A DNA stretch of 64,000 nucleotides from Octopus sinensis (taxonomy: Eukaryota): positions 176,824,001 through 176,888,000 of the forward strand of contig NC_042997.1 of NCBI RefSeq assembly GCF_006345805.1. The letters run 5' to 3'. Below the pieces are notes generated by a model, which had not been told where the DNA came from, ran no database searches, and was given only the letters and a program-made list of their open reading frames with translations. The translations under genes were made by a program, and so were the position numbers. The stretch's first letter is position 1. Every line of letters starts with the position of its first letter. Positions 4,994 through 45,681 of this stretch are shown piece by piece.

Positions 4994-4994
4994 C

Positions 4995-12442: not shown

Positions 12443-12694
12443 GCCAGGTGAAATACTTAGCGGCATTTCGTCTGAGTTCAAATTCCGCCGAGGTTGACTT
12501 TGCCTTTCATCCTCTTGGGGTCGATAAATAAAGTACCAGTTTTGCACTGGGTCGATATAATCGACTTAATCCCTTTGTCTGTCCTTGTTTGTCCCCTCTA
12601 TGTTTAGCCCCTTGTGGGTAGTAAAGAAATAAATTATTATTATTATTATTATTATTATTAGTATCATCATCATCATCATCATCATTATTATTAA

Positions 12695-12739
<45 letters not shown>

Positions 12740-13542: not shown

Positions 13543-14639
13543 TATAACATCCTAGCTGATATAAAGGGTATTGACAGGGAGGGAGGAAGGGAGAGGGAGA
13601 GAGAAGGAACAGGAGAGCAAATGCATGAGAGGAAAGAGAGGGGTGGGGTAGAAAAATAAAGGACATGCATGGCACCAACAAGGCTTGTATGCATAATCGA
13701 CATACATGGTGCAAACAAGGCTTCATGCAATCCGAGAAATTATTAAAACTATTTAGACGATTCGAAAGCCTGTAATGGATATCCACACCATCCAGCATGT
13801 TAGTCCTGTCTCCCTAACAGGGGGAGACTAAAGAAAAACTATAAGAAATAATAATTATCTAATTTTGAATAATGCTAGCGAAAATTACTTTCTGTGTAAT
13901 TTGACTCTGGTTTCGAATATGCAATCTTCTAAATCTTTCACAACTAAGAAGAATTTTGTATTTTGATGAATGGCTTCGTATTCAACTCCTACAGCTAGCA
14001 ATTGAATACCGATTTAAACACGAAGAATTTATGAAAATGTTCCAGCGCAAGATCTCAATGCGAATCTCTTTTTGATTTATGCAAATGCAACCTGTCATAT
14101 ATATTGGTGTCTTCATAAAATCAGCTGTGCTTTGTAATTATTTACATTGCTTCTAATATTCAATATTCCCTAGGACTTTTATAATTCGATACTTATATCC
14201 TATCCCGATACTGTTTGTGTATGCGACAATAACGTCACAGACCATATATACACATGCATATACACACACGTCTATTCTTACACGTGTGCAGAGACGCGCA
14301 TTCAACCCAGCACACATACATGCACATAAATACACAAACATGTATTCATACACATACGCACGCATACGCACACACTGAGCGACACACAGGCATACAGATA
14401 AGAACATGGATACTTATATACATATATATACGCACTTGTACACACACTCACACGCACCTAGGCATATCTACTGCGATGCTAATAGACAGGAAACTACTTA
14501 TACTTACTGCTATTGTGGAAAATTACAAAGAGCTGCGAGCCAACGAGGAATCTTCTGCAAAACATAGTAGCCAAATATCCCTCAAATTTTACTTATTTAA
14601 GCCACTCGATCTCTATTGACATTTGGCCCTCGAAGACTT

Positions 14640-15030
14640 TTCTCTATTGTTTTCGACTCTGGACCGTCTTTTGGCCTCTCCTGGGTCTTGTTGGGCTTGA
14701 AATGTCATCGATGTTTCTCATCTCCTTCCCATCTCTATCCTTTTTACCACTACTATAATGGCCTCTGCTCCTCGTTCTGACTGAGCTCATGTCACACGCA
14801 CTCTTTCCCTACCGATGCACTTGTCTCTCCTCCTACCATCCTCTTGTGTGCACCCTCCTCAGGCTCCACACTAACTCAGTATTTCCTTCCCAGAACGTCG
14901 GTCCACTGGAGTTTCCTCCACGTTCATGTTATTCTTGCAATCGTTGGGACTTAATGGTGTTAACCTTACCGGTGGCGGAGATACTCTGAAGGCTATGGGC
15001 CTTGACCCTCCCTCCAGTCATAACAAGTAA
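14640..15030 (+). mobile_element. Decayed CR1/L2-group LINE 3' end
   Basis: Manual translation ...LFYHYYNGLCSS...HP...FLPRTSVHWS resembles the C-terminal LFY.YY.G.CSSEL...FFPRT..LWN stretch of such LINEs; mirrored at ~36140-36520. Confidence 0.5.
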
Positions 15031-15102
15031 AGTATGTAAGTGTAAATGGCTTAATTGAATAAAAACTAACTGCTAGAATAATAAACATATATGCAATTAT
15101 GT

Positions 15103-15138
<36 letters not shown>

Positions 15139-15291
15139 TACATGCATACTTACATACATACATGCATGCATATTCCCCACAACTAGATAATTCTTTATTG
15201 TTCTCTCCACTTTTCCCCTAATTGACACCGAACAATCATTATAATTATTATTTTTGAAAAATTATTTACTGTTTGAGAAAATTAAAATAGA

Positions 15292-15590
15292 CTGGCGTTC
15301 CCTCGGTTGCGATGACAAGTGCCCCAGCTGAGCCAACCAACGGAACAGCCAGCTCGTGAAATTAACGCTGAAGTGGCTGAGCACTCCGAAAACGTGAGTT
15401 GTCATAACGTAGTTCTCAAGGCGATTCAGCGGAACATACCAAATATGACAAGTCTGACCCTTTCATTGCTAGCTGACTGGACCGGAGCAACGAAAAATAA
15501 AGTGATCTTGTTCAAGACACAAGGTGCCGCCAGGAATTGAACTCACGACCTTACGATCGTGAGCCAAATGCACTAACCACTAAGCCAACC
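15292..15590 (-). mobile_element. SINE family C (tRNA head plus TTGCTCCGGTCCAGTCAGCT core)
   Basis: Minus-strand A box TGGCTTAGTGG and B box GAGTTCAATTCC; related copies at 44115, 54030 and the mirror at 35597. Confidence 0.75.
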
Positions 15591-17964
15591 CACTTTCACT
15601 CGTGACAATTATAAGAATGTTTGCAACAATCAATTATTCTTTGGTTTAGGGACATTTATTTTTATTAGCATTAGTATTGTTAATGCAATTAAAAGATGGT
15701 GGAGATTAGCCCTGAGCAGTATGTGAAATGAAGGACAAGTTTCTCGGACGCAACTCATGTTATGGTCAACATATACACAAACAGTGATGGGAATAATGAT
15801 GTTGGTAGCACTGGTATGGCTGCTGTAGGGGTGGTGTTGGTGTATCTTTGCTAAAAAAAGCATCTCCTCCGTTTGTTCATATATGTTTTTTTTGTTTCTT
15901 TTTCCTTTTTGCATTAGTAACTTTTTGTCGGTTACGCTCCTCACCGTCACCCACGCCACACGTGTCTAAGTGGTCTCTAGGAACAAGGGGCGTGTCTTGA
16001 GGAGTAATTGCCTCTTTTTAATTTGTTGTTCTTTGTGTGTGTGTGTGTGTAGGGGGCTTTCAGTTGCTGTTGGTTGTTGTTTGTTGTTGTTGTTAAGCAA
16101 CAAGACGGGTAAGGGTGATTAGGTGATGGTCTAGGGCTTAGGGGCGGGAGACCCCAGACCTTGGAAAAAAAAACTTTGGTCGTCTTGTTGTAGTCGAGGG
16201 CTCTTCGTTGACGCCCGACACCACTGGGAGGTGGCCCTCGAAGTCGCTGGAAATGGAGATCTCCAGGTCCAATTTCTTGAACGGCTGCTGTTGTTGGTGA
16301 TATGGTGGCTCTTTAGGGTGGTAATTCTTTGTTATTTTTGTTGCTGTTGTTTCTACACTTGTAACTGGCGCTGCAGTCACTGCTGCTGCTGCTGCTACTG
16401 CATGCTATTGTTGTAGTTGCTGTGTTTGCCGTTATTGTTGTTGATGTTAGTGATGTGGCGTTGACAGTACAGGAAGTTTTCTTTCAGCTGTCAATTCTGT
16501 TGTTGGAGGTAGAAAGCCTTGAGTAATTAGTGTTTCCACAGTTGTACTATCAAGACTTTCTACCCACCACTACCCTCTGTAGTTACAGCCCTCCTAGAAT
16601 TTCTATTAGGTCGGATATTTTCCCTAATGCTTCAGGTTTCACATGAATCAGAATTTCCAGCCAAATCCATACTCACTCCTTTGGAGAATCTTTTGATTTC
16701 TAGCAGTGTGCTCGCCTCTTCCAAAAACCACACATTTCGCCAGAGTCGAGAAGTCTAGTTCTGGTGGTGTGTTTGAGATTTTTACACGGATCATTCATCG
16801 TCCCAGTTAGAAGGTAGATGAGTGTGAGTGTAAAATCTACAGTTTTTTGTGTAACAGTGGAGTGCTTCTGTGTTAGAGATTCTGAGTGGAAAATAACTTA
16901 GATACATGGTATTTATTAGCGACAGAGAGGTAATATTTATACCCAGATAAACGTGGATGTTAATGTTGGATGTTCTATTAAAACAAACTATACAGCAGTC
17001 GTTTCCATGAGAGAAACCCTCATATTGGTTTTTTGGTGCAAAATGCAATCTTGTTTATATCGTTAGTGGAGAGATATATCCCCACCATTTCCAGTGTTGA
17101 GACCACCAGAACATGTGATTTCGACCTTCTTTGGTCTCGTCAATGATGGACGCCCCACTATTAGAAATAGCTGTGAACTCATCTCCCCGCCAGCGATATA
17201 TGAAAAAACAAAACAAAAAAACAGTGCCTGAATAGGCGCTGGTATCGCTCACTGATTAATTGCGACTTTCTTTCTGCTCTCGTCTGTTGAAGTATATCTC
17301 CGCCACTTCTAAATATCCAAGCTTTTTTTGCAGAGTGAGATGAGATCGAAAACATTTATGATCTTGGTCACAGAAATAATTTTCACTTTATTTCCGCTGC
17401 TGCAGATGTTGTCAGTACCATCCTTGTCGCTGCAGTTATTGCTTTTTGTTTGAGTGGCAGTGGTAGCAATGGCGGCGGATTTGTTTCTGTTGCTACATTT
17501 AGTTGCTATAACAGTGGCAATGCACAACTGTTTGTTGTTCATGATTTTGCAATTTTCTTTGTTAGGCATGTCATTGGTCTCGGTACTCGGTACTGCTATT
17601 ATTGTTGTTGCAGCTGTTTCTGCTGTTACTAGAGATGTTACTGTTGTCGTTGCTTCTAATGCTGAAACTACTATTTTTAATTACCTCGGCTTTGGTATTG
17701 GGTGGTAGAAGATGATTGCAAAAGACGGTTTCACTTTCAGAATCTCCTCTAACCTTCACCTCTTGCCAGCTGGTTGACAAAGTGGGGTGTCATTCTGAGT
17801 TTTTATTATGCTTCGAAAAGTATTTTACTTGCTCATCTATCAAAAGGATTACATAAAAACATACATACATACATACATACATACACACATGCATAATGTG
17901 TGTATGCATATATATGTGTGCTTCTGTGCGGTTTTCCCTTTGTCTTGCTTTTGTCGATAAATTT

Positions 17965-18197
17965 CTTTTACTTGCTTCAGTCATTTGACTGTGGCCATGC
18001 TGGAGCACCGCCTTTAGTCGAGCCAGTCGACCCCAGGACATTCTTTGTAAGCCTAGTACTTATTCTATCGGTCCCTTTTGCCGAACCGCTAAGTTACTGG
18101 AACGTAGACATACCAGCATCGGTTGTCAAGCGATGTTGGGGGACAAACACAGACACACAGATACACAGACACACACACAGACACAGATACAGACACA

Positions 18198-18247
<50 letters not shown>

Positions 18248-18415
18248 TATATACGACGGGCTTCTTTTCAGTTTCCGTCTACCAAATCCACTTACAAGGC
18301 TTTGGTCGGCCTGAGGCTATAGTAGACACTTGCCCAAGGTACCACGCAGTGGAACCGAACCCGGAACTATGTGGTTCGTAAGCAAGCTACTTACCACACA
18401 GCCACTACTACGCCT
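17965..18415 (-). mobile_element. SINE family B
   Basis: Full reverse-complement match to family B with an internal (CA)n. Confidence 0.87.
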
Positions 18416-18732
18416 ATAGCCACTCCAACTCCTAAAATATGAAAAATTTGCAAGCTACACGAAATACGTACATGGACGTTAACAAACCGTTTGTACACAC
18501 TCTCCCAGCCATTTACATGCAGGCTTAGTCTACTCGTGCTTAGTTGTTCAAATTTCAGTTTGCTATGTGAATGGCCTCCCAGGCCTCCGCAGTCTGGTCG
18601 TTGATCAAATTTCAGCTTATTATGTGCGTTTAATTATGTCCGTTTTTATTATGTGTGTTTAATTTTCTTCAGAGAAACTGTTCGTTATTAAATTTCTTCG
18701 TTTAGAACCGTTCGCAGTTCATATATAGATGG

Positions 18733-19134
<402 letters not shown>

Positions 19135-19302
19135 TAGGGAATAAATCCAAATTTACAGGGAAAAAAATCAGATTTAGGATTAAATCCAATTTTATAGTAA
19201 AATATTATAAAATATTATTAGAGACAAAACCACTATTTTGCAAAACAAACAAGGAAAGACTTAATCAATACATAAAATTTTAATAAATAGTCAAAAAAAC
19301 CG

Positions 19303-19345
19303 CCACTACAATCGTTTCTTGTCTTGATCGACAATCTTCAGGTGG
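19303..19345 (-). ncRNA. Minimal type I hammerhead ribozyme, copy on minus strand
   Basis: Reverse complement reads CCAC CTGAAGA TTGTC GATCAA GACAA GAAAC GATT GTA GTGG. Confidence 0.85.
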
Positions 19346-20540
19346 ACTTCCAATCTAAAAAATCAATATTTTAAAATATAAAAATAATAATTTTAAAATA
19401 ATTAAAGTATGAATGAAAAAATATAAGTATATAATCCATATATAACCTATATATAATCCATATATAATCAATATATAAACAATATATAAACTAAAAAAAC
19501 CTATCAACAATTAAATATAAAATATAAAATATAAAATATAAAACAAAACAAAAAAATAATAATAATATAATAATAAACTATATATACACCCATACACATA
19601 TACCTAATTATATATAACCATATCTAACTACATACACTAAATCACACACCTATATATATATATCCCTATACATACACATAAAAACGTCTAGGCAACTATA
19701 AATAAATAAAATAGCTAAATACTTCAACACAATACTTATTCATACTCCCACACACACACACATACAACCCACATTCACGCTCTAGAAAACGGACATCACT
19801 CAAAACTATGAACGGAGAAATGGAATAAATGGAATTAAAAATTATATTCACTTGGTAAAACGAACACTACTTAAAAATTATGAATGAAACAATGCAATAA
19901 AACAACAGACATCGCAAATAGACACAAATTACTACGAATTCCTTAACAAACCTACCATGATAAACCAAAACTCATAAAAACATATAATGATAAAATCTCC
20001 CTTTACTAAACTCTATAACAAACCTATATAGCAATCCCCCTAACCTAAACATTCACACACAAATACACACACGTAAACCACACACCCACGACATATACAA
20101 ATACCCACATCACTTACACATACCAATACATACATATAAACCTCAACATATACTCCAAAAACCCACTCAACCCCACACAGACAAATAAACACAAAAATTA
20201 TGAATGGATTCTTTTATAAAACTACCATGATAAGCTAAAACTCACAAAACAGAAATGATAAAACCTCCCTTTACTAAACACTATAACATACTTATATAGC
20301 AATCCCTTTAACCTATACATTCACACACAAAAACACACACGTAAACCACACACCCATAACAAATACAAACACCCACCCCACTCACACACACCCACAAGTA
20401 CATATAAGCCTCAACATATACACCAAACAAAATTACTTTACCAAAGAACTTAACATATGTATAAAAAGTATAACCGCTCTGGAAACGAACATCTCTAAAT
20501 TAATGAATGGAGAAATGGAATAAATGGAATTAAAAATAAT

Positions 20541-22576
20541 ATTCACGTGGCAAAACGAACACCACTCAAAAATTATGAATGAAACAATGTAATAAAACAA
20601 CCAACATCGAAAATAGACAAATTACCACGAATTCCCTAAAAAAACCATGAAAAACCAAAACTCTTAAAAACATATAACGATAAAATCTCCCTTTGCTAAA
20701 CTCTATAACAAGCCTATATAGTAATCCCCCTAACCTAAACATTCACACACAAATACACACACGTAAACCACAGACCCACGACTTATACACATACCTATAC
20801 TAACTTATAAACCTCAATATACACCAAAACCCACTCCCTCCCCACACAGACAAATTAACACATACATCCCAAAACCTAAATAACAAACCCATATACACAT
20901 TCACACACAAACACACACACACGCAAAACACACACACACAACAGATACATATACTCCCTCACATATACGCATATACATACTCACTAAACTCGATATATAC
21001 AACAATATTTACACACCCACACTCATACAGATAAATAAATTATACAACTAAAAACTCACACACAATCTCATATACATAAACACTCCTATGAAAACAACAT
21101 TAAATACATCGTAATTAACCAGAATATCAAAAATAACAATATGACATAAGGATAAATAAAATACATACTTAACAAGTCAGTTTCAAATTATGAAGTGAAA
21201 TTAAATTCTTAGCCGTTAAAAAAGTCAAACCAAAATTACGTTACCATAGAAATAACTTATGTAAAAAAGAATACGCGCCATGGAAAGTAAACGTCATTTA
21301 AATTATGAATGGAGAAATAGAATAAATGGAACTAAAAACTATATCCACGTGGCAAACCAACACTACTTAAAAAAATTTTATTATGAATGGATTCTTTAAA
21401 AACTACCATGAAAAATCATTATATACATTTATGAGCTTTAGCTCACCTTAGCAGCTCTAACAAACAACTTGCAGTAACCCAAACCCATTCTCTATGCCTA
21501 CCTCACTACTACACTATTCCATTCACAATTCCAAGCAACGCTAGTCCACCACCCGGTTATTCACGTGGCAAAACGAACACCACTCAAAAATTATGAATGA
21601 AACAATGTAATAAAACAACCAACATCGAAAATAGACAAATTACCACGAATTCCCTAAAAAACCATGATAAACCAAAACTCATAAAAACATATAACGATAA
21701 AATCTCCCTTTGCTAAACTCTATAACAAACCTATATAGCAATCCCCCTAACCTAAACATTCACACACAAATACACACACGTAAACCACAGACCCACGACT
21801 TATACACATACCTATACTAACTTATAAACCTCAATATACACCAAAACCCACTCCCTCCCCACACAGACAAATTAACACATACATCCCAAAACCTAAATAA
21901 CAAACCCATATACACATTCACACACAAACACACACACACGCAAAACACACACACACAACAGATACATATACTCCCTCACATATACGCATATACATACTCA
22001 CTAAACTCGATATATACAACAATATTTACACACCCACACTCATACAGATAAATAAATTATACAACTAAAAACTCACACACAATCTCATATACATAAACAC
22101 TCCTATGAAAACAACATTAAATACATCGTAATTAACCAGAATATCAAAAATAACAATATGACATAAGGATAAATAAAATACATACTTACAAGTCAGTTTC
22201 AAATTATGAAGTGAAATTAAATTCTTAGCCGTTAAAAAAACCAAACCAAAATTACGTTACCATAGAAATAACTTATGTAAAAAAATAGAATACGCGCCAT
22301 AGAAAGTAAACGTCATTTAAATTATGAATGGAGAAATAGAATAAATGGAACTAAAAACTATATCCACGTAGCAAACCAACACTACTTAAAAAAATTTATT
22401 ATGAATGGATTCTTTAAAAAACTACCATGAAAAATCATTATATACATTTATGAGCTTTAGCTCAACTTAGCAGCTCTAACAAACAACTTGCAGTAACCCA
22501 AACCTATTCTCGATGCCTACCTCACTACCACACTAATCCATTCACAATTCCAAACAACGCTAGTCCACCACCCGGT
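20541..22576. repeat. About 1.02-kb direct tandem duplication inside the PLE 3' UTR (mirror ~28485-30520)
   Basis: CACGTGGCAAAACGAACACCACTCAAAAATTATG starts at ~20544 and ~21563; both units end CCACCCGGTTA. Confidence 0.9.
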
Positions 22577-23835
22577 TACAATTCCCAACTCCACCCATTC
22601 ATTCACAATTTCAACGACGTTCGCCTCCACAGCGCTACATATAAGCCTCAACATATACACCGGAGATACACTTACACATCCGTGCGGATGGGTGAGAGTA
22701 TACATTGAGTGTAGTGATGGGGCTCCCATTACTATACACATTTGTACCTGTGTGGTAGTCTCCATGTGTATATTCACGCACGGGTATAAATGCAGGGGGT
22801 ACACGCGCACGTCATTTGCGTGTACCCCCTCACATGTACATATGCATGCTATTTGGGCTCGATATATGCAACAATGTAATCGCGCCCGCATACATGCATA
22901 TGGGCGAATTGCACAATCAAAAACGCACACGTGTGTGTGTGCGTTCCCTGGTTGTGCAATTCACCCATCTGGGTGTGAGTGGGTGTAAGCGTATCGCTGT
23001 GGATGTCGAGCTTGATACGTATGTATATGAGTGTGTATTAGGGGGTTGTACGTATTAATTGTGTGCATGTGCTTCACGCACTTGCGTCCATGTATGGATG
23101 AATATATTGGGATTACTATGTGGGTGTAAATTGGGTATGGAGGGGGGAGTTTTGTCATTGTATGGGTGTGGGTTTCATTTGTGATGGTGGTTAGTTGGTG
23201 ATTTTTAGTATGTTCTGTATATTTGGGTTAGTTATGTATTATTCTAGTGTGTATAATTGTATACATATAATTGGTGTGAATGGGATTACGCCCATTTTTG
23301 GGGATGTATGTTTATTTATCCATGTGGGGCGGGAGTGGCCGTTAGGTGTATATGCTGAGGCTCACATGCAATTCCAGGTACAGCGAATGAAGTGGGCACT
23401 TATATTTGTTATGGGTGTGTGTACTTTATTATAACAGACAATACCCAAATAAAATCTGTCAATTCAACATACCAAATAAAAAACAAAAAACAAAGGGATC
23501 TTAAACATTCACACATACATACAAAACTCAATAAAAACACCACTAAATAACACCCATAAACATATAAATATATCCTCCAAAATACATATAACAAATGCAT
23601 AATAAAAATACATAATAAAATAAAAAAAAAAAAAAAAAAAAAATATATAAATAAAAAAAAAAAAATCCAATATAAATTATTAAAGTTTTAACGTACCATA
23701 AACTGTTAAATTAATATACATTAAAATTGAACTAATTAAAACAAAGAAATATCAATAAAGACTAACTATAATTAAAGCCTAGACAACATAACCAAAAATA
23801 TATTATCTAAACTAATTTAAACTAAACTAAATTAA

Positions 23836-24633
23836 TAGTAATTTGTGTCTATTTGCGATGTCTGTTGTTTTATTGCATTGTTTCATTCATAATTTTTAAG
23901 TAGTGTTCGTTTTACCAAGTGAATATAAGTTTTAATTCCATTTATTCCATTTCTCCGTTCATAGTTTTGAGTGATGTCCGTTTTCTAGAGCGTGAATGTG
24001 GTTGTATGTGTGTGTGTGGGGAGTATGAATAAGTATTGTGTTGAAGTATTTAGCTATTTTATTTATTTATAGTTGCCTAGACGTTTTTATGTGTATGTAT
24101 AGGGATATATATATAGGTGTGTGATTTAGTGTATGTAGTTAGATATGGTTATATATAATTAGGTATATGTGTATGGGTGTATATATAGTTTATTATTATA
24201 TTATTATTATTTTTTTGTTTTGTTTTATATTTTATATTTTATATTTTAATTGTTGATAGGTTTTTTTTAGTTTATATATTGTTTATATATTGATTATATA
24301 TGGATTATATAGGTTATATATGGATTATATACTTATATTTTTTCATTCATACTTTAATTATTTTAAAATTATTATTTTTATATTTTAAAATATTGATTTT
24401 TTAGATTGGAAGTCCACCTGAAGATTGTCGATCAAGACAAGAAACGATTGTAGTGGCGGTTTTTTGACTATTTATTAAAATTTTATGTATTGATTAAGTC
24501 TTTCCTTGTTTGTTTTGCAAAATAGTGGTTTTGTCTCTAATAATATTTTATAATATTTTACTATAAAATTGGATTTAATCCTAAATCTGATTTTTTTCCC
24601 TGTAAATTTGGATTTATTCCCTAATATTTATTA
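23836..24633 (+). repeat. 5' pseudo-LTR of the PLE (direct repeat of 31123-31932)
   Basis: TAGTAATTTGTGTCT...TTCCCTAATATTTATTA occurs at both places and inverted at 19131-19930. Confidence 0.92.
24414..24456 (+). ncRNA. Minimal type I hammerhead ribozyme in the 5' pLTR
   Basis: Stem I CCAC/GTGG; core CTGAAGA; stem II TTGTC/GACAA with loop GATCAA; GAAA; 2-bp stem III AC/GT with loop GATT; cleavage triplet GUA (cut after 24452). Confidence 0.87.
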
Positions 24634-24689
24634 TTTATATAATATTGATAATTTTGTATATTGAGTGTAATACCTCAATTTCGTAAATT

Positions 24690-27205
24690 ATGGATTTTAC
24701 AGGTAAGATAGAACCGCTGTTTTGGGATTCATCTTTGAAAGATATTCCTATTCCTTCTAGAAAGGAATTTATCTTGAAACTTGTTAATAATGTTAAAGAT
24801 TTTATTTCTAGAATTAAATGGAAAGCTTTTTACTATAATTTTTATTTATTTAATGATATTGATAGTAGGAATGATAATTTTACCTCTAAATTTAAATCTA
24901 GAAAGGAACCTCCATTTAATAAAGAATTACAATTACTTGAAGATAGTATATGGAAGGTGGTAAAAAATATTGAATTCCATAAATACCCAAATAGAAATAA
25001 TGAATATTTAAGGAATTTAGCAATTAAAATTAAAGATATGAGAAATATGGATGGTATTATAGTACAATCTGATAAAACAAGGAACTTATATAAATTAGAT
25101 GTTAAATTATATGATAAACTATTAGGGAAAGAAATAATTAAAAAATATAAAATTGTTCCAGATGATATTCTTTATAATATTAATAAGGCCTCTAAAGTAG
25201 TAATGTTAAAATATGAGTTGGATAATAAAACTGAACCTTATGTACCTTTGCACCCCAGAATTACTCTTAAAGACCATAAAGATAATTTTTATTCAGACCC
25301 TAAAGTTAGATTAATTTGCCCATGTAAATCGGACCTAGGTAAATTAAGTAAATTTATTTTAGATAAATATATTGATAAGTTAAATAAACTTAATTATTTA
25401 AAATTATGGTTTAGTAATAATAATACATTGAAATGGTTTAATAATATTAAAGATAAAAATCGTTATAAATTTATTCAAATAGATATAGATAATTATTATT
25501 CTTCTATTAATGAAATTGTGTTTAATAAGCGCTTATTTTCGCAATGAATAAAGTGGGTATGTCACGGGAAGAAGTTAATGTAATTAAAATGGCTAGGAAA
25601 TCGCTAATTAAATATAAAAATAAATTATGGGCTAGGAATGATACTAGAGAATTGTTTTGATATACCTATGGGAGCACCAGATTCTGCACAGGCTACTGAT
25701 TTAGTAGGTATTTTTCTTTTATCTGAACTCCAATTAGAAAATCTTAAGATAGAGGGTGGTTTATATAGATACGATCTTCTACTAGTTACAAAGAATTGTA
25801 CTAATAGGAATCTAGAAGTATATAAGAAAAAACTATATAGTTTCTTTAAAATATATGGTTTAAGTATTACTATATATAAGGAGAATTATAATGTTAATTA
25901 TTTAGATGTTAATTTTAATCTTATTACAGGTAAAACACAACCATATCATAAACTTAATGAGAACCTTAGATATATAAATGTTAATAGTAATCACCCATTT
26001 TCTATTAAAAAATCGTTGATTAATAATATAAGTAAACGTATTTCATTACTCTCTTATGATATAGAGATTTTTAATAAACATGCTAATTATTATAATGAGG
26101 CCCTTAGAGGGGCAGGTTATAATAGGAATATTAAATTTTATAATATTAGTGATAAAGATTTAATTGTTAATTTTCGAGATACTTCTAATAATAATTATAA
26201 TTTTGTTAGGTTTAGTGGTAAAAATAATAGATATTATAAAAAAAATAAAAAAATGATAAAAATATAAATAAGAATAATAATAATAATAATAATATAATAA
26301 TAATAATATAAATAAGAATAATATAAATAAAAATAAATTTAATAATTATTATAATAATTATATTGATAAATTTAATAATATTAATAATTCCTTAAATGCT
26401 GTACATAGATATAATTCTGATAATAATTTTAATAAAATAAAGAATTATAAATATATTTATAATAATGATAATAATAATAAGGTTAATAAGAATAAAATTT
26501 GGTTAATAGTTCCTTATGGAGATCAAGTAAAAACGAATATTATTAAAGAGATTTTAGATGTTATAGAACTATTTATTAGAGATAATCGTAAATATAGAAA
26601 CATTTTCTCTTTTAATAATTTTGGAGTTGGTTACTCTACCACTAATAATGTTGGTAACATTATTTCTTCATTTAATAAATATAAACTGAATAATTTTTAT
26701 AAAAAGAAATTATTTGATAATAATATTAATAATGATAAGACTTATATTAATTGTACATGTAGAGATAAATCTAATTGTATATTAAATAATAATTGTGATA
26801 TTAACGATGTAGTGTATAAATGTATAGTTACATTACATGATAATAACTTTAAGAATAATAATTACACAAAAGCGGTTTATATAGGTTCTACTTTCCTCAA
26901 AAATAAAACTAAGAATCGCACAACATATGAATTCTTTTAAAAATAAAAACTTAATCAACTCAACCGGACTTAGTAAGTACATTTGGAGTCTTAAATCACT
27001 AAATATTAATTATAGTTTAATTTGGGAAATAATTTGTAAAACTAAATCATATACTATAGGAGCTAATTGTTGTTATTTATGCTCTAATGAGTTTAAAGAA
27101 ATGTTATTTTATAAGTATGATAATTTACTTAATACTGGTGAAGAGCGCAAAATAAAATGCAGACATAAGTTACTTTACCTATATAATAAGTTTCATGATA
27201 AATAG
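24690..27205 (+). pseudogene. Penelope-like element RT + C-terminal GIY-YIG endonuclease (about 840 aa reconstructed; Hydra-clade-like), frameshifted
   Basis: DKT (25071), ITLKDHK, RLICPCKS, motif A FIQIDIDNYY, motif B FDIPMGAPDSAQATDLVG, motif C YRYD (25764-25775), YLDVNF, SNHP, KIWLIVPY, CTC..C..C (26752), VVYKC (26809), VYIGST (26875), KLRIAQH, NSTGLSKYIW, CYLC, KCRH. Indels near 25529, 25645, 26250, 26294 and 26893. Confidence 0.93.
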
Positions 27206-30200
27206 CAATAATAGTGCCCTTTAGGTTACTTTAGTTTAGTTTAAATTAGTTTAGATAATATATTTTTGGTTATGTTGTCTAGGCTTTAATTATAGTTAGT
27301 CTTTATTGATATTTCTTTGTTTTAATTAGTTCATTTTTAATGTATATTAATTTAACAGTTTATGGTACGTTAAAACTTTAATAATTTATATTAGATTTTT
27401 TTTAAAATTTTTTTATTTATATATATTTTTTTTAAAAATTTTATTTTATTATGTATTTTTATTATGCATTTGTTATATGTATTTTGGAGGATATATTTAT
27501 ATGTTTATGGGTGTTATTTAGTGGTGTTTTTATTGAGTTTTGTATGTATGTGTGAATGTTTAAAATCCCTTTGTTTTTTGTTTTTTATTTGGTATGTTGA
27601 ATTGACAGATTTTATTTGGGTATTGTCTGTTATAATAAAGTACACACACCCATAACAAATATAAGTGCCCACTTCATTCGCTGTACCTGGAATTGCATGT
27701 GAGCCTCAGCATATACACCTAACGGCCACTCCCGCCCCACATGGATAAATAACATACATCCCCAAAATGGGCGTAATCCCATTCACACCAATTATATGTA
27801 TACAATTATACACACTAGAATAATACATAACTAACCCAAATATACAGAACATACTAAAAATCACCAACTAACCACCATCACAAATGAAACCCACACCCAT
27901 ACAATGACAAAACTCCCCCCTCCATACCCAATTTACACCCACATAGTAATCCCAATATATTCATCCATACATGGACGCAAGTGCGTGAAGCACATGCACA
28001 CAATTAATACGTACAACCCCCTAATACACACTCATATACATACGTATCAAGCTCGACATCCACAGCGATACGCTTACACCCACTCACACCCAGATGGGTG
28101 AATTGCACAACCAGGGAACGCACACACACACGTGTGCGTTTTTTGATTGTGCAATTCGCCCATATGCATGTATGCGGGCGCGATTACATTGTTGCATATA
28201 TCGAGCCCAAATAGCATGCATATGTACATGTGAGGGGGTACACGCAAATGACGTGCGCGTGTAACCCCTGCATTTATACCCGTGCGTGAATATACACATG
28301 GAGACTACCACACAGGTACAAATGTGTATAGTAATGGGAGCCCCATCACTACACTCAATGTATACTCTCACCCATCCGCACGGATGTGTAAGTGTATCTC
28401 CGGTGTATATGTTGAGGCTTATATGTAGCGCTGTGGAGGCGAACGTCGTTGAAATTGTGAATGAATGGGTGGAGTTGGGAATTGTAACCGGGTGGTGGAC
28501 TAGCGTTGTTTGGAATTGTGAATGGATTAGTGTGGTAGTGAGGTAGGCATCGAGAATAGGTTTGGGTTACTGCAAGTTGTTTGTTAGAGCTGCTAAGGTG
28601 AGCTAAAGCTCATAAATGTATATAATGATTTTTCATGGTAGTTTTTTAAAGAATCCATTCATAATAAATTTTTTTAAGTAGTGTTGGTTTGCTACGTGGA
28701 TATAGTTTTTAGTTCCATTTATTCTATTTCTCCATTCATAATTTAAATGACGTTTACTTTCTATGGCGCGTATTCTTCTTTTTTTTACATAAGTTATTTC
28801 TATGGTAACGTAATTTTGGTTTGGTTTTTTTTAACGGCTAAGAATTTAATTTCACTTCATAATTTGAAACTGACTTGTAAGTATGTATTTTATTTATCCT
28901 TATGTCATATTGTTATTTTTGATATTCTGGTTAATTACGATGTATTTAATGTTGTTTTCATAGGAGTGTTTATGTATATGAGATTGTGTGTGAGTTTTTA
29001 GTTGTATAATTTATTTATCTGTATGAGTGTGGGTGTGTAAATATTGTTGTATATATCGAGTTTAGTGAGTATGTATATGCGTATATGTGAGGGAGTATAT
29101 GTATCTGTTGTGTGTGTGTGTTTTGCGTGTGTGTGTGTTTGTGTGTGAATGTGTATATGGGTTTGTTATTTAGGTTTTGGGATGTATGTGTTAATTTGTC
29201 TGTGTGGGGAGGGAGTGGGTTTTGGTGTATATTGAGGTTTATAAGTTAGTATAGGTATGTGTATAAGTCGTGGGTCTGTGGTTTACGTGTGTGTATTTGT
29301 GTGTGAATGTTTAGGTTAGGGGGATTGCTATATAGGTTTGTTATAGAGTTTAGCAAAGGGAGATTTTATCGTTATATGTTTTTATGAGTTTTGGTTTATC
29401 ATGTTTTTTTTAGGGAATTCGTGGTAATTTGTCTATTTTCGATGTTGGTTGTTTTATTACATTGTTTCATTCATAATTTTTGAGTGGTGTTCGTTTTGCC
29501 ACGTGAATAACCGGGTGGTGGACTAGCGTTGCTTGGAATTGTGAATGGAATAGTGTAGTAGTGAGGTAGGCATAGAGAATGGGTTTGGGTTACTGCAAGT
29601 TGTTTGTTAGAGCTGCTAAGGTGAGCTAAAGCTCATAAATGTATATATGATTTTTCATGGTAGTTTTTTAAAGAATCCATTCATAATAAATTTTTTTAAG
29701 TAGTGTTGGTTTGCCACGTGGATATAGTTTTTAGTTCCATTTATTCTATTTCTCCATTCATAATTTAAATGACGTTTACTTTCCATGGCGCGTATTCTTT
29801 TTTTACATAAGTTATTTCTATGGTAACGTAATTTGGTTTGATTTTTTTAACGGCTAAGAATTTAATTTCACTTCATAATTTGTAACTGAATTGTAAGTAT
29901 GTATTTGATTTATCCTTATGTCATATTGTTATTTTGATATTTTGGTTAATTACGATGTATTTAATGTTGTTTTCATTGAGTGTTTATGTATATGAGATTG
30001 TGTGTGATTTTTTAGTTGTATAATTTATTTATCTGTATGAGTGTGGGTGTGTAAATATTGTTATATATCGAGTTTATTGAGTATGTATATGCGTATATGT
30101 GAGGGAGTATATGTATCTGTTGTGTGTGTGTGTTTTGCGTGTGTGTGTGTTTGTGTGTGAATGTGTTTTTGGGTTTGTTATTTAGGTTTTGGGATGTATG

Positions 30201-31122
30201 TGTTAATTTGTCTGTGTGGTGAGGGAGTGGGTATTGGTGTATATTGAGGTTTATAAGTTAGTATAGGTATGTGTATAAGTAGTAGGTCTGTGGTTTACGT
30301 GTGTGTATTTGTGTGTGAATGTTTAGGTTAGGGGGATTACTATATAGGTTGTTATAGAGTTTAGCAAAGGGAGATTTTATCGTTATATGTTTTTAAGAGT
30401 TTTGGTTTTTCATGGTTTTTTTTAGGGAATTCGTGGTAATTTGTCTATTTTCGATGTTGGTTGTTTTATTAATTGTTTCATTCATAATTTTTGAGTGGTG
30501 TTCGTTTTGCCACGTGAATATTATTTTTAATTCCATTTATTCCATTTCTCCATTCATTAATTTAGAGATGTTCGTTTCCAGAGCGGTTATACTTTTTATA
30601 CATATGTTAAGTTCTTTGGTAAAGTAATTTGTTTGGTGTATATGTTGAGGCTTATATGTACTTGTGGGTGTGTGTGAGTGGGGTGGGTGTTTTGTATTTG
30701 TTATGGGTGTGTGGTTTACGTGTGTTTTTTGGTGTGAATGTATAGGTTAAAGGGATTGCTATATAAGTATGTTATAGTGTTTAGTAAAGGGAGGTTTTAT
30801 CATTTCTGTTTTGTGAGTTTTAGCTTATCATGGTAGTTTTATAAAAGAATCCATTCATAATTTTTGTGTTTATTTGTCTGTGTGGGGTTGAGTGGGTTTT
30901 TGGAGTATATGTTGAGGTTTATATGTATGTATTGGTATGTGTAAGTGGTGTGGGTATTTGTATATGTCGTGGGTGTGTGGTTTACGTGTGTGTATTTGTG
31001 TGTGAATGTTTAGGTTAGGGGGATTGCTATATAGGTTTGTTATAGAGTTTAGTAAAGGGAGATTTTATCATTATATGTTTTTATGAGTTTTGGTTATCAT
31101 GGTAGGTTTGTTAAGGAATTCG

Positions 31123-31932
31123 TAGTAATTTGTGTCTATTTGCGATGTCTGTGTTTTATTGCATTGTTTCATTCATAATTTTTAAGTAGTGTTCGTTTTA
31201 CCAAGTGAATATTTTTAATTCCATTTATTCCATTTCTCCGTTCATAGTTTTGAGTGATGTCCGTTTTCTAGAGCGTGAATGTGGGTTGTATGTGTGTGTG
31301 TGTGTGGGAGTATGAATAAGTATTGTGTTGAAGTATTTAGCTATTTTATTTATTTATAGTTGCCTAGACGTTTTTATGTGTATGTATAGGGATATATATA
31401 TAGGTGTGTGATTTAGTGTATGTAGTTAGATATGGTTATATATAATTAGGTATATGTGTATGGGTGTATATATAGTTTATTATTATATTTATTATTATTT
31501 TTTGTTTTGTTTTATATTTTATATTTTATATTTTATATTTTATATTTAATTGTTGATAGGTTTTTTTAGTTTATATATGTTTAATATTGATTATATATGG
31601 ATTATATATAGGTTATATATGGATTATATACTTATATTTTTTCATTCATACTTTAATTATTTTAAAATTATTATTTTTATATTTTAAAATATTGATTTTT
31701 TAGATTGGAAGTCCACCTGAAGATTGTCGATCAAGACAAGAAACGATTGTAGTGGCGGTTTTTTTTGACTATTTATTAAAATTTTATGTATTGATTAAGT
31801 CTTTCCTTGTTTGTTTTGCAAAATAGTGGTTTTGTCTCTAATAATATTTTATAATATTTACTATAAAATTGGATTTAATCCTAAATCTGATTTTTTCCCC
31901 TGTAAATTTGGATTATTCCCTAATATTTATTA
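31123..31932 (+). repeat. 3' pseudo-LTR of the PLE
   Basis: Direct repeat of 23836-24633. Confidence 0.92.
31713..31755 (+). ncRNA. Minimal type I hammerhead ribozyme in the 3' pLTR
   Basis: Identical to 24414-24456; cut after 31751. Confidence 0.87.
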
Positions 31933-32156
31933 TTATATATATATTTATATATATATTATGTATGTATGTATATATATGTATTATATATATAGTATATATA
32001 TGTATGTATTATATATATATTATATGTATGTATATATATATATATATCTATATATATATATATATATATGATATATATATATATATATATGTATGTATTA
32101 TATATATATTATATATATATGTATGTATATATATATATATATATTATATATATATG

Positions 32157-32195
<39 letters not shown>

Positions 32196-32216
32196 ATATA
32201 TATATATATATATATG

Positions 32217-32300
<84 letters not shown>

Positions 32301-32301
32301 G

Positions 32302-32353
<52 letters not shown>

Positions 32354-32449
32354 ATATATTATATATATATATATATATATGTATGTATATATATATATAT
32401 ATATTATGTATATATATCTATATATATATATATATATATATACGATATA

Positions 32450-32490
<41 letters not shown>
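31933..32490. repeat. (TA)n/(TATG)n tract, mirror of 18736-19130 but longer and noisier
   Basis: Direct reading. Confidence 0.93.
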
Positions 32491-32493
<3 letters not shown>

Positions 32494-35400
32494 ATCTATA
32501 TATGACTGCGAACGGTTCTAAACGAAAATTTAATAACGAACAGTTTCTCTGAAGAAAATTAAACACACATAATAAAACGGACATAATTAAACGCACATAA
32601 TAAGCTGAAATTGATCAACGACCAGACTGCGGAGGCCTGGGAGGCCATTCACATAGCAAACTGAATTTGAACACTAAGCACGAGTAGACTAAGCCTGCAT
32701 GTAAATGGCTGGGAGAGTGTGTACAAACGGTTTGTTAACGTCCATGTACGTATTTCGTGTAGCTTGCAAATTTTTCATATTTTAGGAGTTGGAGTGGCTA
32801 TAGGCGTAGTAGTGGCTGTGTGGTAAGTAGCTTGCTTACGAACCACATAGTTCCGGGTTCGGTTCCATTGGTGGTACCTTTGGGCAAGTGTCTACTATAG
32901 CCTCAGGCCGACCAAAGCCTTGTAAGTGGATTTGGTAGACGGAAACTGAAAAGAAGCCCGTCGTATATATGTATGTGTGTGTGTGTGTGTGTGTGGTGGT
33001 GTCTGTGTGTGTGTGTGTGTGTGTCTGGTCTGTATCTGTGTCTGTGTGTGTTCTGTGTATCTGTGTGTCTTGTGTTTGTCCCCCAACATCGCTTGACAAC
33101 CGATGCTGGTATGTCTACGTTCCAGTAACTTAGCGGTTCGGCAAAAGGGACCGATAGAATAAGTACTAGGCTTACAAGAATGTCCTGGGGTCGACTGGCT
33201 CGACTAAAGGCGGTGCTCCAGCATGGCCACAGTCAAATGACTGAAGCAAAGTAAAAGAAATTTATCGACAAAAGCAAGACAAAGGGAAAACCGCACAGAC
33301 AACACATATATATGCATACACACATTATGCATGTGTGTATGTATGTATGTATGTATGTATGTTTTTATGTAATCCTTTTGATAGATGAGCAAGTAAAATA
33401 CTTTTCGAAGCATAATAAAAACTCAGAATGACACCCCACTTTGTCAACCAGCTGGCAAGGTGAAGGTTAGAGGAGATTCTGAAGTGAAACCGTCTTTTGC
33501 AATCATCTTCCTACCACCCAATACCAAAGCCGAGGTAATTAAAAATAGTAGTTTCAGCATTAGAAGCAACGACAACAGTAACATCTCTAGTACAGCAGAA
33601 ACAGCTGCAACAACAATAATAGCATACCGAGTACCGAGACAATGACTGCCTAACAAAGAAAATTGCAAAATCATGAACAACAACAGTTGTGCATTGCCAC
33701 TGTTATAGCAACTAAATGTAGCAACAGAAACAAATCCGCCGCCATTGCTACCACTGCCACTCAAACAAAAGGCATAACTGCAGCGACAAGGATGGTACTG
33801 ACACATCTGCAGCAGCGGAAATAAAGTGAAAATTATTTCTGTGACCAAGATCATAATGTTTTCGATCTCATCTCACTCTGCAAAAAAAGCTTGGATATTT
33901 AGAAGTGGCGGAGATATACTTCAACAGACGAGAGCAGAAAGAAAGTCGCAATTAATCAGTGAGCGATACCAGCGCCTATTCAGGCACTGTTTTTTTTGTT
34001 TTGTTTTTTCATATATCGCTGGCGGGGAGATGAGTTCACAGCTATTTCTAATAGTGGGCGTCCATCATTGACGAGACCAAAGAAGGTCGAAATCACATGT
34101 TCTGGTGGTCTCAACACGGAAATGGTGGTGATATATCTCTCCACTAACGATATAACAAGATTGCATTTTGCACCAAAAACAATATGAGGGTTTCTCTCAT
34201 GAAACGACTGCTGTATAGTTTGTTTTAATAGAACATCCAACATTAACATCCACGTTTATCTGGGTATAAATATTACCTCTCTGTCGCTAATAAATACCAT
34301 GTATCTAAGTTATTTTCACTCAGAATCTCTAACACAGAAGCACTCCACTGTTACACAAAAAACTGTAGATTTACACTCACACTCATCTACCTTCTAACTG
34401 GACGATGAATGATCCGTGTAAAAATCTCAACACACCACCAGAACTAGACTTCTCGACTCTGGCGAAATGTGTGGTTTTTGGAAGAGGCGAGCACACTGCT
34501 AGAAATCAAAGATTCTCCAAAGGAGTGAGTATGGATTTGGCTGGAAAATTCTGATTCATGTGAAACCTGAAGCATTAGGGAAAATATACCGACCTAATAG
34601 AATTCTAGGAGGGCTGTAACTACAGAGGGTAGTGGTGGGTAGAAATCTTGATAGTACACTGTGGAAACACTAATTACTCAAGGCTTTCTACCTCCAACAA
34701 CGAATTGACAGCTGAAAGAAAACTTCCTGTACTGTCAACGCCACATCACTAACATCAACAACAATAACGGCAAACACAGCAACTACAACAATAGCATGCA
34801 GTAGCAGCAGCAAGCAGCAGTGACTGCAGCGCCAGTTACAAGTGTAGAAACAACAGCAACAAAAATAACAAAGAATTACCACCCTAAAGAGCCACCATAT
34901 CACCACAACAGCAGCGTTCAAGAAATTGGACCTGGAGATCTCCATTTCCAGCGACTTCGAGGGCCACCTCCCAGTGGTGTCGGGCGTCAACGAAGAGCCC
35001 TCGACTACAACAAGACGACCAAAGTTTTTTTTTCCAAGGTCTGGGTTCTCCCGCCCCTAAGCCCTAGACCATCACCTAATCACCCTTCCCGTCTTGTTGC
35101 TTAACAACAACAACAAACAAAACCAACAGCAACTGAAAGCCCCCTACACACACACACACACAAGAACAACAAATTAAAAGAGGCAATTACTCCTCAAGAC
35201 ACGCCCTTGTCCTAGAGACCACTTAGACACGTGTGGCGTGGGTGACGGTGAGGAGCGGTAACCGACAAAAAGTTACTAATGCAAAAAGGAAAAAGAAACA
35301 AAAAAAACATATATGAACAAACGGAGGAGATGCTTTTTTTAGCAAAGATACACCAACACACCCCTACAGCCGCCTACCAGTGCCTACCAACTCATTATCC

Positions 35401-36044
35401 CCATCACTGTTTGTGTTATGTTGACCATAACATGAGTTGCGTCCGAGAAACTTGTCCTTCATTTCACATACTGCTCAGGCTAATCTCCACCATCTTAATT
35501 GCATTAACAATACTAATGCTAATAAAAATAAATGTCCCTAAACCAAAGATAAATTGATTGTTGCAAACATTCTTATAATTGTCACGAGTGAAAGTGGGTT
35601 GGCTTAGTGGTTAGTGCATTTGGCTCACGATCGTCGGTCGTGAGTTCAATCCTCTGGCGGCGCCTTGTGTCCTTGAACAAGATCACTTATTTTTCGTTGC
35701 TCCGGTCCAGTCAGCTAGCATGAAAGGGTCAGACTTGTCATATTTGGTATGTTCCGCTGATCGCCTTGAGAACTACGTTATGACAACTCACGTTTTCGGA
35801 GTGCTCAGCCACTTCAGCGTTAATTTCACGAGCTGGCTGTTCCGTTGGTTGGCTCAGCTGGGGCACTTGTCATCGCAACCGAGGAACGCCAGTCTATTTT
35901 TAATTTTCTCAACAGTAAATAATTTTCAAAAATAATAATTATAATGATTGTTCGGTGTCAATTAGGGGAAAAGTGGAGAGAACAATAAAGAATTCTAGTT
36001 GTGGGGAATATGCATGCATGTATGTATGTAAGTATGCATGTATT

Positions 36045-36075
<31 letters not shown>

Positions 36076-45620: not shown

Positions 45621-45681
45621 ACTATTACTATTAGTATTAACAACCATAGCAACAACGACAGCAATAATAATAATAATAATG

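Follow-up and report, generated by a model that had tools for sequence, protein, structure and literature searches.

An unusually large Hydra-clade Penelope-like element insertion with a long repeat-rich tail in the octopus genome

Results

We analysed a window of 64 kb from the Octopus sinensis genome, in which a Penelope-like element (PLE) lies between two (TA)n runs (Table 1). The runs directly adjoin its outer ends at 19131 and 31932, as an earlier note on this DNA had described, and the 7.3-kb unit given there agrees with the 7,287-nt spacing of a pLTR direct repeat (23830-24650 versus 31117-31949). The same note had read the locus as a series of pLTR, reading frame, tail and pLTR. All these parts are present, but 19131-23829 is more than a 5' pLTR. 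Reverse-complemented, it corresponds to 27229-31932, forming a 5'-truncated inverted copy of tail and pLTR. It is thus this inverted copy, and not (TA)n, that the full unit's 5' pLTR adjoins. Identity between 19001-23835 and 32068-27226 was 97.8%, with 0.3-1.2% substitutions per kb. In a three-way alignment, the pLTR copies differed almost solely by homopolymer and microsatellite indels, with almost no substitutions. Given the inverted copy, upstream pLTR and full unit in series, we read the interval as a canonical PLE insertion complex; a partial-tandem pLTR with an adjacent inverted 5'-truncated copy is typical of PLEs (Craig et al. 2021, PMC8557442). The same order of inverted truncated copy, pLTR and full copy between TA runs also occurs in Argonauta hians (locus L002) and in locus L004. 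Furthermore, the inverted arm at its inner end meets the upstream pLTR start within 6 nt (23829/23836), and in L002 the inverted copy likewise ends at the pLTR start (9541/9542), as is expected from integration and not from a random later duplication.

Table 1 Features of the insertion complex and its surroundings (positions in the 64-kb window)
Feature	Position	Strand	Evidence or remark
Left outer palindrome arm, outside the element	13144-18719		Ordinary flank; contains repeats of SINE-like and foldback types
(TA)n microsatellite, left target flank	18720-19130		Repeat families and sequence read-out
pLTR part of inverted copy, hammerhead 19303-19345	19131-19940	-	96.8% identity to reverse complement of 23830-24661
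Inverted copy of long non-coding tail	19941-23829	-	Stops 24 nt before stop-codon equivalent; junction read
Upstream pLTR, partial tandem copy of the unit's last ~0.82 kb	23836-24650	+	Direct repeat; hammerhead 24414-24456
Full unit, 7.29 kb	24651-31932	+	Repeat spacing 7,287 nt
RT - CxCX5C linker - GIY-YIG reading frame, broken	24690-27205	+	Alignment to relatives
AT-rich, C-poor leader of tail	27206-27640	+	Sequence, composition
A/C-rich segment of tail (~0.85 kb)	27641-28484	+	Watson-Crick palindrome at 28091-28166
Tandem repeat unit R1, G/T-rich, 7% C	28485-29508	+	28485-29509 versus 29508-30520, 96.3% identity
Tandem repeat unit R2	29509-30520	+	Repeat comparison with R1
Degenerate repeat copies, sub-periods ~690 and ~267 nt	30521-31275	+	Extend ~160 nt into pLTR
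Downstream pLTR, 3' end of unit, hammerhead 31713-31755	31117-31932	+	Direct repeat, hammerhead scan
(TA)n microsatellite, right target flank	31933-32520		TRF: period 2, 289 copies, 31923-32488
Right outer palindrome arm	32521-38023		1-bp deletions in excess versus left arm

The RT/GIY-YIG reading frame reported in the earlier note was recovered and shows full-length collinearity with a family of proteins of about 700 aa. Its 2.5 kb and its motifs are as reported, but the frame itself is broken, with four frame changes as assembled (near 25540, 25655, 26270-26490 and 26900), and RT motif C is GLYRYDLL, as against GLYRDDGL in the family (D-to-Y). The apparent in-frame stops at 25545-25605 fall within an out-of-frame stretch. 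This copy is probably dead as assembled. In the family alignment, DKT in place of DKG (D128, K129 and T130), the linker CTCRDKSNC (CxCX5C; C617/C619/C625), the CxxC and CxH motifs around E and N (CYLC..E, N and CRH; C729/C732/E735, N749 and C758/H760) and the C-terminal GIY-YIG pattern VVYKC...YIGST...H...E...N all fall at invariant columns, while the RWK-type motif, R(W/I)KWK, is RIKWK here and RMRWK in the family. The alignment contained no further conserved Cys/His and no CCHH motif. Sequence profiles were weak: Pfam GIY-YIG matched 2 of 21 family members (E=0.003), Pfam RVT_1 matched one of the 21, retron RT appeared at E~1, and a Pfam search of the window's own protein copy gave no match. 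Protein identity to the nearest database relatives was 30-40%, Octopus fragments excepted. The AlphaFold model of one relative (P0004, pLDDT 90) had TERT (3du5) as its top Foldseek match (E=1e-8), which supports, at the level of predicted fold, a relationship between the RT of the family and telomerase RT.

The hammerheads that the earlier note had placed in the pLTRs are the same motif in three pLTR copies, and their cores were the sole matches in a motif-plus-helix scan of both strands of the 64 kb, with 0.02 expected per dinucleotide shuffle. An Rfam search returned no hammerhead at the gathering score nor at E<=10. As predicted from sequence, the motif has type-I topology and a CUGANGA ... 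GAAA ... UA core, and the upstream-pLTR copy would cut after 24452. Helix III consists of one base pair and a self-complementary loop, favouring an intermolecular 8-bp helix, and the dimer cofold was -23.4 kcal/mol versus 2 x -7.5 for monomers. Minimal PLE hammerheads reportedly cleave as dimers. The layout recurs in thirty relatives, where helix III is palindromic and helices I and II covary. According to Craig et al. 2021 (PMC8557442), the Hydra clade is marked by R(W/I)KWK, DKT, CxCX5C, CxxC/CxH, (TA)n insertion and pLTR hammerheads. All of these are present, and on its motifs, (TA)n target and pLTR hammerheads the element is assigned, as the earlier note had proposed, to the Hydra clade.

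With regard to size, this copy is a clear outlier in both unit length and stop-to-ribozyme distance. The unit of 7,287 nt compares with 2.36-3.41 kb in about 40 relatives, and the clade's compactness, which the earlier note had mentioned, also accords with the <3 kb given by Craig et al. (PMC8557442). The stop codon lies 4,508 nt from the hammerhead (78-260 nt in relatives) and the non-coding tail exceeds theirs in length about tenfold, whereas the hammerhead-to-ATG distance of 234 nt is near their 140-200 nt; the extra DNA is thus located between stop codon and ribozyme. The roughly 3.9 kb of non-coding modules described earlier were confirmed, in that the 3.9-4.1 kb from stop codon to pLTR gave no Pfam match and are interrupted, in each of the six frames, by roughly one stop per 16 codons. 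G/T-rich tandem repeats with units of about 1.02 kb cover 2.8 kb in all and merge into the pLTR. R1 and R2 differ by 2.4% substitutions, and degenerate copies were seen as matches of 30199-30585 to 30865-31275, 30632-30876 to 30899-31142 and 23830-23992 to 30428-30585, so the internal amplification suggested by the earlier note is real. Furthermore, 27937-28081 is complementary to 29031-29175, so the A/C-rich segment is in part a diverged repeat copy in inverted orientation.

These observations are best explained, with a probability of roughly 0.6, by a single Hydra-clade PLE insertion complex in (TA)n whose tail would be a self-derived passenger repeat array in the template RNA. Alternatively, a compact Hydra-type element might have undergone a one-off accretion, its spacer being filled in place by a nested repeat or satellite or by tandem duplication and its arm arising as a later segmental inverted duplication, so that the tail was never in transposing RNA. 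We consider this unlikely, although several observations favour it. All of the approximately 40 relatives are compact, the 0.85-kb A/C-rich stretch is unlike the rest of the element in composition, and the best DNA match, an Octopus vulgaris fragment, keeps 90% identity through the stop codon but loses homology within about 100 nt past it and then runs into unrelated repeats. No tail homologue was found in 43 kb of sequence from that relative, and the fading homology suggests that a tail-less form of the family may exist. Accretion is also favoured by the surrounding palindrome (below), which reaches 6 kb past the element and is as diverged there as in the element arms. Against it, the repeat units resemble the pLTR in composition (C-poor, T-rich) and their 3' part is homologous to its first 160 nt. 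The sequence read-out showed neither termini of a foreign element in the tail nor a target duplication, and the tail has no similarity to the remainder of the 64-kb window. Finally, agreement of the inverted arm with the pLTR start within 6 nt, as in independent Argonauta insertions, would be an unlikely coincidence.

The inverted symmetry far exceeds the element. A near-perfect palindrome of about 25 kb (13144-23835 versus 27226-38023) includes 6 kb of ordinary flank, and reflects either a duplication in inverted orientation or an error in the assembly path. The earlier note had not described this palindrome with the locus at its centre, nor the inverted left 4.7 kb, nor the broken frame. The outer arms (13144-19131 versus 38023-32096) were 96.8% identical, with 0.6% substitutions, similar to the 0.77% of the element arms, and the remainder 1-bp indels, 89 of 115 of which were deletions in the right flank. 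Since the arm differences are mostly 1-bp indels, local assembly accuracy is poor. Moreover, with both tail copies inside one near-palindrome whose flanks are equally similar, the copies are not fully independent witnesses. The 4.7-kb inverted arms might even have misled the long-read assembler, making at least the right flank (32.5-38.0 kb) and possibly the tail repeat number false. This reading, which we regard as quite improbable, draws on the indel-dominated differences with their 89:26 excess in the right flank, on the near absence of other differences among the three pLTR copies, and on the report that assemblies often have trouble with PLE structures of this kind (Craig et al. 2021, PMC8557442). 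However, at the outer junction (38023) a SINE 5' end adjoins a diverged pLTR fragment, a novel junction that a graph mis-walk alone would not create. The arms also differ in structure, as the left-arm R2 is an R1/R2 mosaic, which shows that, once the copies existed, repeats exchanged sequence or consensus sequences were mixed. Furthermore, the element-internal junctions fit the canonical PLE pattern, and a false outer flank need not make the unit of reading frame, tail and pLTR false.

The tail also contains two significant RNA structures (z = -9.5 and -8.3), and the R1/R2 junction forms a hairpin of about 145 bp on the + strand only (29359-29656), with 77 Watson-Crick and 47 G.U positions versus one A.C. 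About half of its potential A-U pairs are replaced by G.U. ADAR hyper-editing on long double-stranded RNA reaches about half of potential A-U pairs. There is a slim chance that the tail was shaped at the RNA level, either by A-to-I editing of its own hairpin in a cephalopod host, which reverse transcription would have fixed as a genomic fossil in the form of G/T-rich, A-depleted repeats, or by selection of the structure as functional RNA. Very improbable is a functional RNA cargo, an idea of the earlier note; selection would then keep the tail in a cephalopod PLE lineage for use as a scaffold, for template recognition or as a supply of regulatory or edited RNA. The structures, the strand-specific hairpin and, if the passenger-array reading holds, survival of at least one insertion favour it. 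Against it, the tail is known from one locus only, its mean folding z-score is unremarkable (-1.4, + strand), each arm has the hairpin just once, and the G.U excess is in part another expression of the G/T-rich, C-poor composition. In addition, relatives are able to transpose with no tail of this kind, and the sole close relative, the O. vulgaris fragment, does not share it.

Discussion

Under the preferred reading, a single insertion complex with a passenger array, transcription would run through the partial tandem, as would be expected for this family of elements. The type-I minimal hammerheads of successive pLTRs, in which the helix III segment ACGAUUGU is self-complementary, would pair as dimers and could excise unit-length RNA. 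The RT/GIY-YIG protein would then cut (TA)n and prime reverse transcription on both DNA strands, which would give rise to the full copy as well as the inverted, truncated one; in vitro, both strands are cleaved and extended by a PLE protein (PMC11167929). The "giant 3' UTR" of the earlier note would be a spacer of 4.07 kb that separates the stop codon from a ribozyme-bearing terminus of about 0.66 kb. It would have arisen when 3'-proximal sequence of the element itself was duplicated in tandem and in inverted orientation, and would comprise the G/T-rich units of ~1.02 kb, an inverted copy of older date and degenerate sub-repeats merging into the pLTR. Given that the inverted and the direct copy both carry the tail, the template RNA of this insertion would already have contained it, which suggests a passenger array that survived at least one retrotransposition and not a conserved functional domain. 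The 25-kb palindrome would be a later event or an assembly path, with the 4.7-kb inverted arms of the element as its seed.

The locus is an unusually large Hydra-clade PLE insertion and not a new kind of system: the undescribed system for which the earlier note had made it a candidate is a known kind of element, unusual in size. If other copies share the tail, this would be the first demonstration that a Hydra-clade PLE can bear and pass on several kilobases of non-coding load between ORF and ribozyme. Such propagation, if true, bears on how much template PLE RTs can copy, on the site where the protein recognises its RNA and on the birth of satellite-like arrays inside retroelements. If the tail is a one-off, this is an ordinary decayed transposon copy. 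In addition, PLE inverted arms at the centre of a 25-kb palindrome are relevant to PLE-driven structural variation and to octopus assembly errors.

Internal tandem repeats in transposon untranslated regions can seed satellites, as in the case of mouse L1 promoter monomers. Transposons with such repeats likewise carry a self-derived non-coding array; here, in contrast, the array lies in a PLE 3' spacer, has inverted copies and lacks a known promoter role. Animal non-LTR retrozymes are tandem hammerhead repeats derived from PLE pLTRs (bioRxiv 10.64898/2026.07.22.740005), and the tail likewise consists of tandem non-coding repeats related to a pLTR. Its R units, however, are about 1 kb long and lie inside an ORF-bearing unit, and the motif-plus-helix scan found no hammerhead core on either strand of 27206-31275, so that the tandem units do not each carry one and membership among non-LTR retrozymes is rejected. 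In type-I topology, core, helix III and pLTR location, the hammerheads resemble the minimal dimeric hammerheads of PLEs (Cervera & de la Pena 2014, PMC4209133) with no structural difference, although those here are predicted and match no Rfam model. With the Hydra clade (Craig et al. 2021, PMC8557442), the element shares the RWK-type motif, DKT, CxCX5C, CxxC/CxH and lack of CCHH, as well as the pLTR hammerhead, (TA)n insertion and the partial-tandem pLTR with an inverted 5'-truncated copy. It departs from the clade in its 7.29-kb unit, members being "generally <3 kb" as a tendency and not by strict criterion, and in a spacer made up of a tandem and inverted repeat array.

Insertion architecture

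Self-comparison of the window revealed a segment of ~0.82 kb in three copies, the pLTRs, whose differences in a three-way alignment are almost all homopolymer or microsatellite indels. The direct copies enclose a reading frame (24690-27205) followed by ~3.9 kb without one. Because 19001-23835 matches 27226-32068 in reverse complement (97.8% identity), the left part of the complex is an inverted copy of this non-coding stretch and the pLTR; it ends 24 nt after the equivalent of the stop codon and no more than 6 nt from the start of the upstream pLTR. Long (TA)n adjoins both outer ends, so that the order is (TA)n, inverted 5'-truncated copy, pLTR, ORF, spacer (the ~4-kb non-coding tail up to the ribozyme-bearing terminus), pLTR and (TA)n. 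This insertion architecture is canonical for a Penelope-like element (PLE). The layout described in the earlier note, pLTR, ORF, non-coding DNA and pLTR with (TA)n at the outer ends, stands except on the left, where an inverted copy of tail and pLTR takes the place of a simple pLTR. Argonauta hians (locus L002) has a matching arrangement, in which TA runs enclose an inverted copy, then a pLTR and then a full copy, with flanks that are not inverted. Given that the inner junction follows PLE rules, we interpret the inverted element copy as having arisen by integration.

Coordinates of the element, its spacer and dispersed repeats in the window
Feature	Coordinates	Strand	Remarks
pLTR copy, upstream	23830-24650	+	direct repeat; hammerhead 24414-24456
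pLTR copy, downstream	31117-31949	+	95.5% identical; 7,287 nt spacing to upstream copy; hammerhead 31713-31755
pLTR copy in inverted arm	19098-19940	-	96.8% identical; hammerhead 19303-19345
AT-rich, C-poor leader	27206-27640
A/C-rich stretch	27641-28484		27937-28081 complementary to 29031-29175, hence partly an inverted, diverged repeat copy
Watson-Crick palindrome	28091-28166		inside the A/C-rich stretch
R1 and R2, tandem G/T-rich units of ~1.02 kb (7% C)	28485-29508, 29509-30520		2.4% substitutions apart
Hairpin of ~145 bp across the R1/R2 junction	29359-29656		inverted copy in left arm
Degenerate repeat copies	30521-31275		sub-periods of ~690 and ~267 nt
SINE-like copies, short tandem cluster	12441-13545
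Further SINE-like copies	37628-37960, 45238-45638, 47438-47687, 58035-58270
Foldback/MITE-like element, ~1.1 kb	4306-5398		own reverse complement at 84% identity
Foldback/MITE-like partial copies	17964-18415, 32802-33258, 39680-40138, 52491-52890, 54389-55042, 61685-61856

Origin and structure of the spacer

The first 160 nt of the pLTR have their homologue in the 3' part of the tandem units, and units and pLTR are alike in composition; we therefore take the array to have grown out of 3'-proximal sequence of the element itself, rather than from a gene picked up elsewhere or a recognisable foreign transposon. A coding role of the tail was rejected because all six frames meet a stop about every 16 codons and no Pfam family matches the longest open stretches. 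An origin as a copy of other window sequence was rejected as well, nothing else in the window being similar to the tail, as were retrozyme-like units with hammerheads, which the ribozyme scan places in the pLTR copies only. The two R1 copies (left versus right arm) differ by 0.3%. The left-arm unit at the R2 position (20540-21559) lies 1.4% from both right-arm R1 and R2 (28485-30520) and, being equidistant from them, is an R1/R2 mosaic, to be explained by gene conversion, by template switching of the RT or by consensus mixing.

In the majority of 200-nt windows, the spacer is no more stably folded than its shuffles (mean z = -1.4, sense strand). Two stronger regions are the Watson-Crick palindrome near 28.1 kb (z = -8.3) and the R1/R2 junction hairpin (z = -9.5). 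The latter exists on the sense strand only, where Watson-Crick pairs occupy 77 positions and G.U pairs 47, with just one A.C. This G.U excess partly reflects the G/T-rich, C-poor composition, and the pattern still needs a strand-specific mutation process or RNA-level selection; possible causes are strand-specific mutation, RNA editing fixed by retrotransposition, or selection. The neighbour preference of ADAR at the G.U sites gave a weak trend (5' A/U 73% versus 60%), and A/G and C/T differences among repeat copies numbered 104 versus 43, counts that are non-independent and confounded by composition. We report the junction hairpin as an unexplained observation, not as a finding. Coding, Pfam and folding analyses of the window copy showed no function for the spacer.

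A palindrome of 25 kb

Inverted symmetry extends 6 kb past the (TA)n on both sides, 13144-19131 being the reverse complement of 32096-38023. The result is a 25-kb near-palindrome (13144-23835 versus 27226-38023) whose arms each include ~6 kb of ordinary non-element flank and whose sole unique part is the pLTR and ORF (23836-27225, 3.4 kb). Substitutions separate the two sides to the same degree in the flanks (0.6%) as within the element arms (0.77%), and most arm differences are 1-bp indels. Of these kinds of difference, 89 of the 115 gaps in the flanks are deletions in the right arm (32096-38023) relative to the left, many of them outside homopolymers, an excess suggestive of an inaccurate consensus or of sparse reads. 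The outer boundary of the palindrome is the 5' end of a SINE-like copy. At the right boundary, the SINE end adjoins a 5'-truncated pLTR-like fragment (38023-38770, 83% identical to 24119-24338), which starts exactly at the palindrome end, lacks the hammerhead part and is followed by ~0.55 kb of (TA)n; it probably stems from a related PLE that inserted earlier.

We take the flank palindrome to be secondary to integration of the element. It is either an inverted duplication by template switching, seeded by the 4.7-kb inverted arms of the element, or an assembly path in which the assembler returned through a flank it had already used. Real, distinct copies are favoured by the novel junction at 38023 and by the mosaic R unit in the left arm; the indel spectrum speaks for poor read support on the right. 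A fold-back or missed-adapter chimeric read was rejected as the cause, given the 3.4-kb unique central spacer and an inner junction that follows PLE rules.

The SINE-like family has a tRNA-like head (GGCGAAATGGTAGAATCGC...), and the 5' end of one of its copies marks the left palindrome boundary (13144).

Protein and hammerhead ribozyme

A database search recovered ~700-aa proteins with 30-40% identity over 97-98% of the conceptual product, including Argonauta hians proteins and Octopus fragments, the latter with at most 89% local identity. The window protein has no Pfam match, and family members match RVT_1 and GIY-YIG weakly. For one relative (P0004), telomerase RT was the best structural match (E=1e-8) to the AlphaFold model (pLDDT 90), consistent with the known relationship of PLE RTs and TERT as sister groups. 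Motifs were compared with the Hydra-clade features given by Craig et al. 2021 (PMC8557442). In the family alignment, the window protein has an RWK-type motif (here RIKWK), DKT and a CxCX5C linker (CTCRDKSNC), and in the GIY-YIG domain a CxxC and a CxH flank the conserved E and N; no further conserved Cys or His appeared in this alignment. The earlier note recognised the element correctly: judged by its motifs, it is a Hydra-clade PLE in an octopod-like genome.

As assembled, the ORF changes frame four times; the in-frame stops that seem to occur at 25545-25605 fall in a stretch that is read correctly in another frame. Some frame changes may be assembly errors because the local indel accuracy is poor; the right-arm deletion excess casts doubt on them too. 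RT motif C reads GLYRYDLL in the window versus GLYRDDGL in every relative, and one catalytic aspartate is therefore lost. The window copy is probably inactive as assembled. The coding region (24690-27205) is extremely AT-rich (18-24% G+C, 42% A), and an Asn/Lys-rich low-complexity insert (~26270-26490) is absent from most relatives.

Rfam, at the gathering score and at E<=10, matched miRNA models to (TA)n look-alikes and reported no hammerhead. A scan of both strands for CUGANGA, helix II, GAAA, a short helix III, U-H and a helix I of at least 4 bp gave exactly three matches in 64 kb, at the equivalent position in all three pLTR copies; the expectation was a mean of 0.02 matches per dinucleotide shuffle. 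Helix III consists of one base pair and a loop, the segment ACGAUUGU is self-complementary, and two copies cofold at -23.4 kcal/mol versus -7.5 for each alone. The predicted hammerhead is of the minimal PLE type and the canonical dimer type. Relatives' hammerheads (30 distinct) share the layout, the palindromic helix III and the UA cut site, with helices I and II varying and their pairing kept. An exact-pattern scan of metagenome contigs for the window hammerhead gave no match. Cuts are predicted after 24452 and 31751. The integrated 3' end (31932) lies ~180 nt past the predicted cut, which would fit reverse transcription that starts internally on RNA left uncut or in multimeric form; internal initiation is described for a PLE in vitro (PMC11167929).

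In the pLTR of the Argonauta hians locus L002 (9655-9735), CUGACGAG and GAAAC stand ~60 nt apart; the strict scan called no hammerhead there, and this may be a long-helix-II or split-core variant.

Comparison with other copies and relatives

Should a single integration event have made both element copies, the spacer would already have been present in the template RNA. We prefer this reading, drawn from one locus, and give it a probability of roughly 60%. Protein searches with the RT core and the EN part found no full copies of the window element's family, and exact look-ups of window ORF pieces and of an O. bimaculoides chimeric gene model (P0040) returned no record. A locus of O. bimaculoides (L087) has only a weak 105-nt match to the window. 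The one close relative, from Octopus vulgaris (L086, OX597818.1), is 90% identical over window 25508-27204; it is a 5'-truncated ORF fragment in which homology to the window is lost within ~100 nt past the stop. Two direct and two inverted repeats of ~370 bp, unrelated to the window tail, begin ~95 nt after this stop (fragment and repeats together, L086 26723-29950), and no homologue of the tail was found in 43 kb. Such a locus could represent a form of the family that lacks the tail, or else a rearranged fragment.

L086, too, has a repeat block 3' of the ORF, one that may or may not belong to the element. Elsewhere in this locus (7657-7991), a solo 3'-terminal fragment of ~190 nt, 80% identical to the window pLTR end, starts just after the hammerhead position and adjoins a TA run and a short inverted piece; it resembles, on a miniature scale, the insertion architecture described for the window.

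In spacer length, the window copy is a clear outlier. Its tandem unit measures 7,287 nt, against 2.36-2.85 kb, with one of 3.41 kb, among relatives in metagenome contigs with measurable tandem units (n~40); the unit of Argonauta hians (L002) is 3.2 kb, and two further loci (L004 and L005) are likewise compact. The distance from hammerhead to ATG is 234 nt versus 140-200 nt in relatives, and that from stop to hammerhead 4,508 nt versus 78-260 nt, placing the extra 4 kb squarely in the interval that separates the stop codon from the ribozyme-bearing terminus. The element stands out by the exceptional length of its spacer, which consists of repeats, and is otherwise of a known kind.
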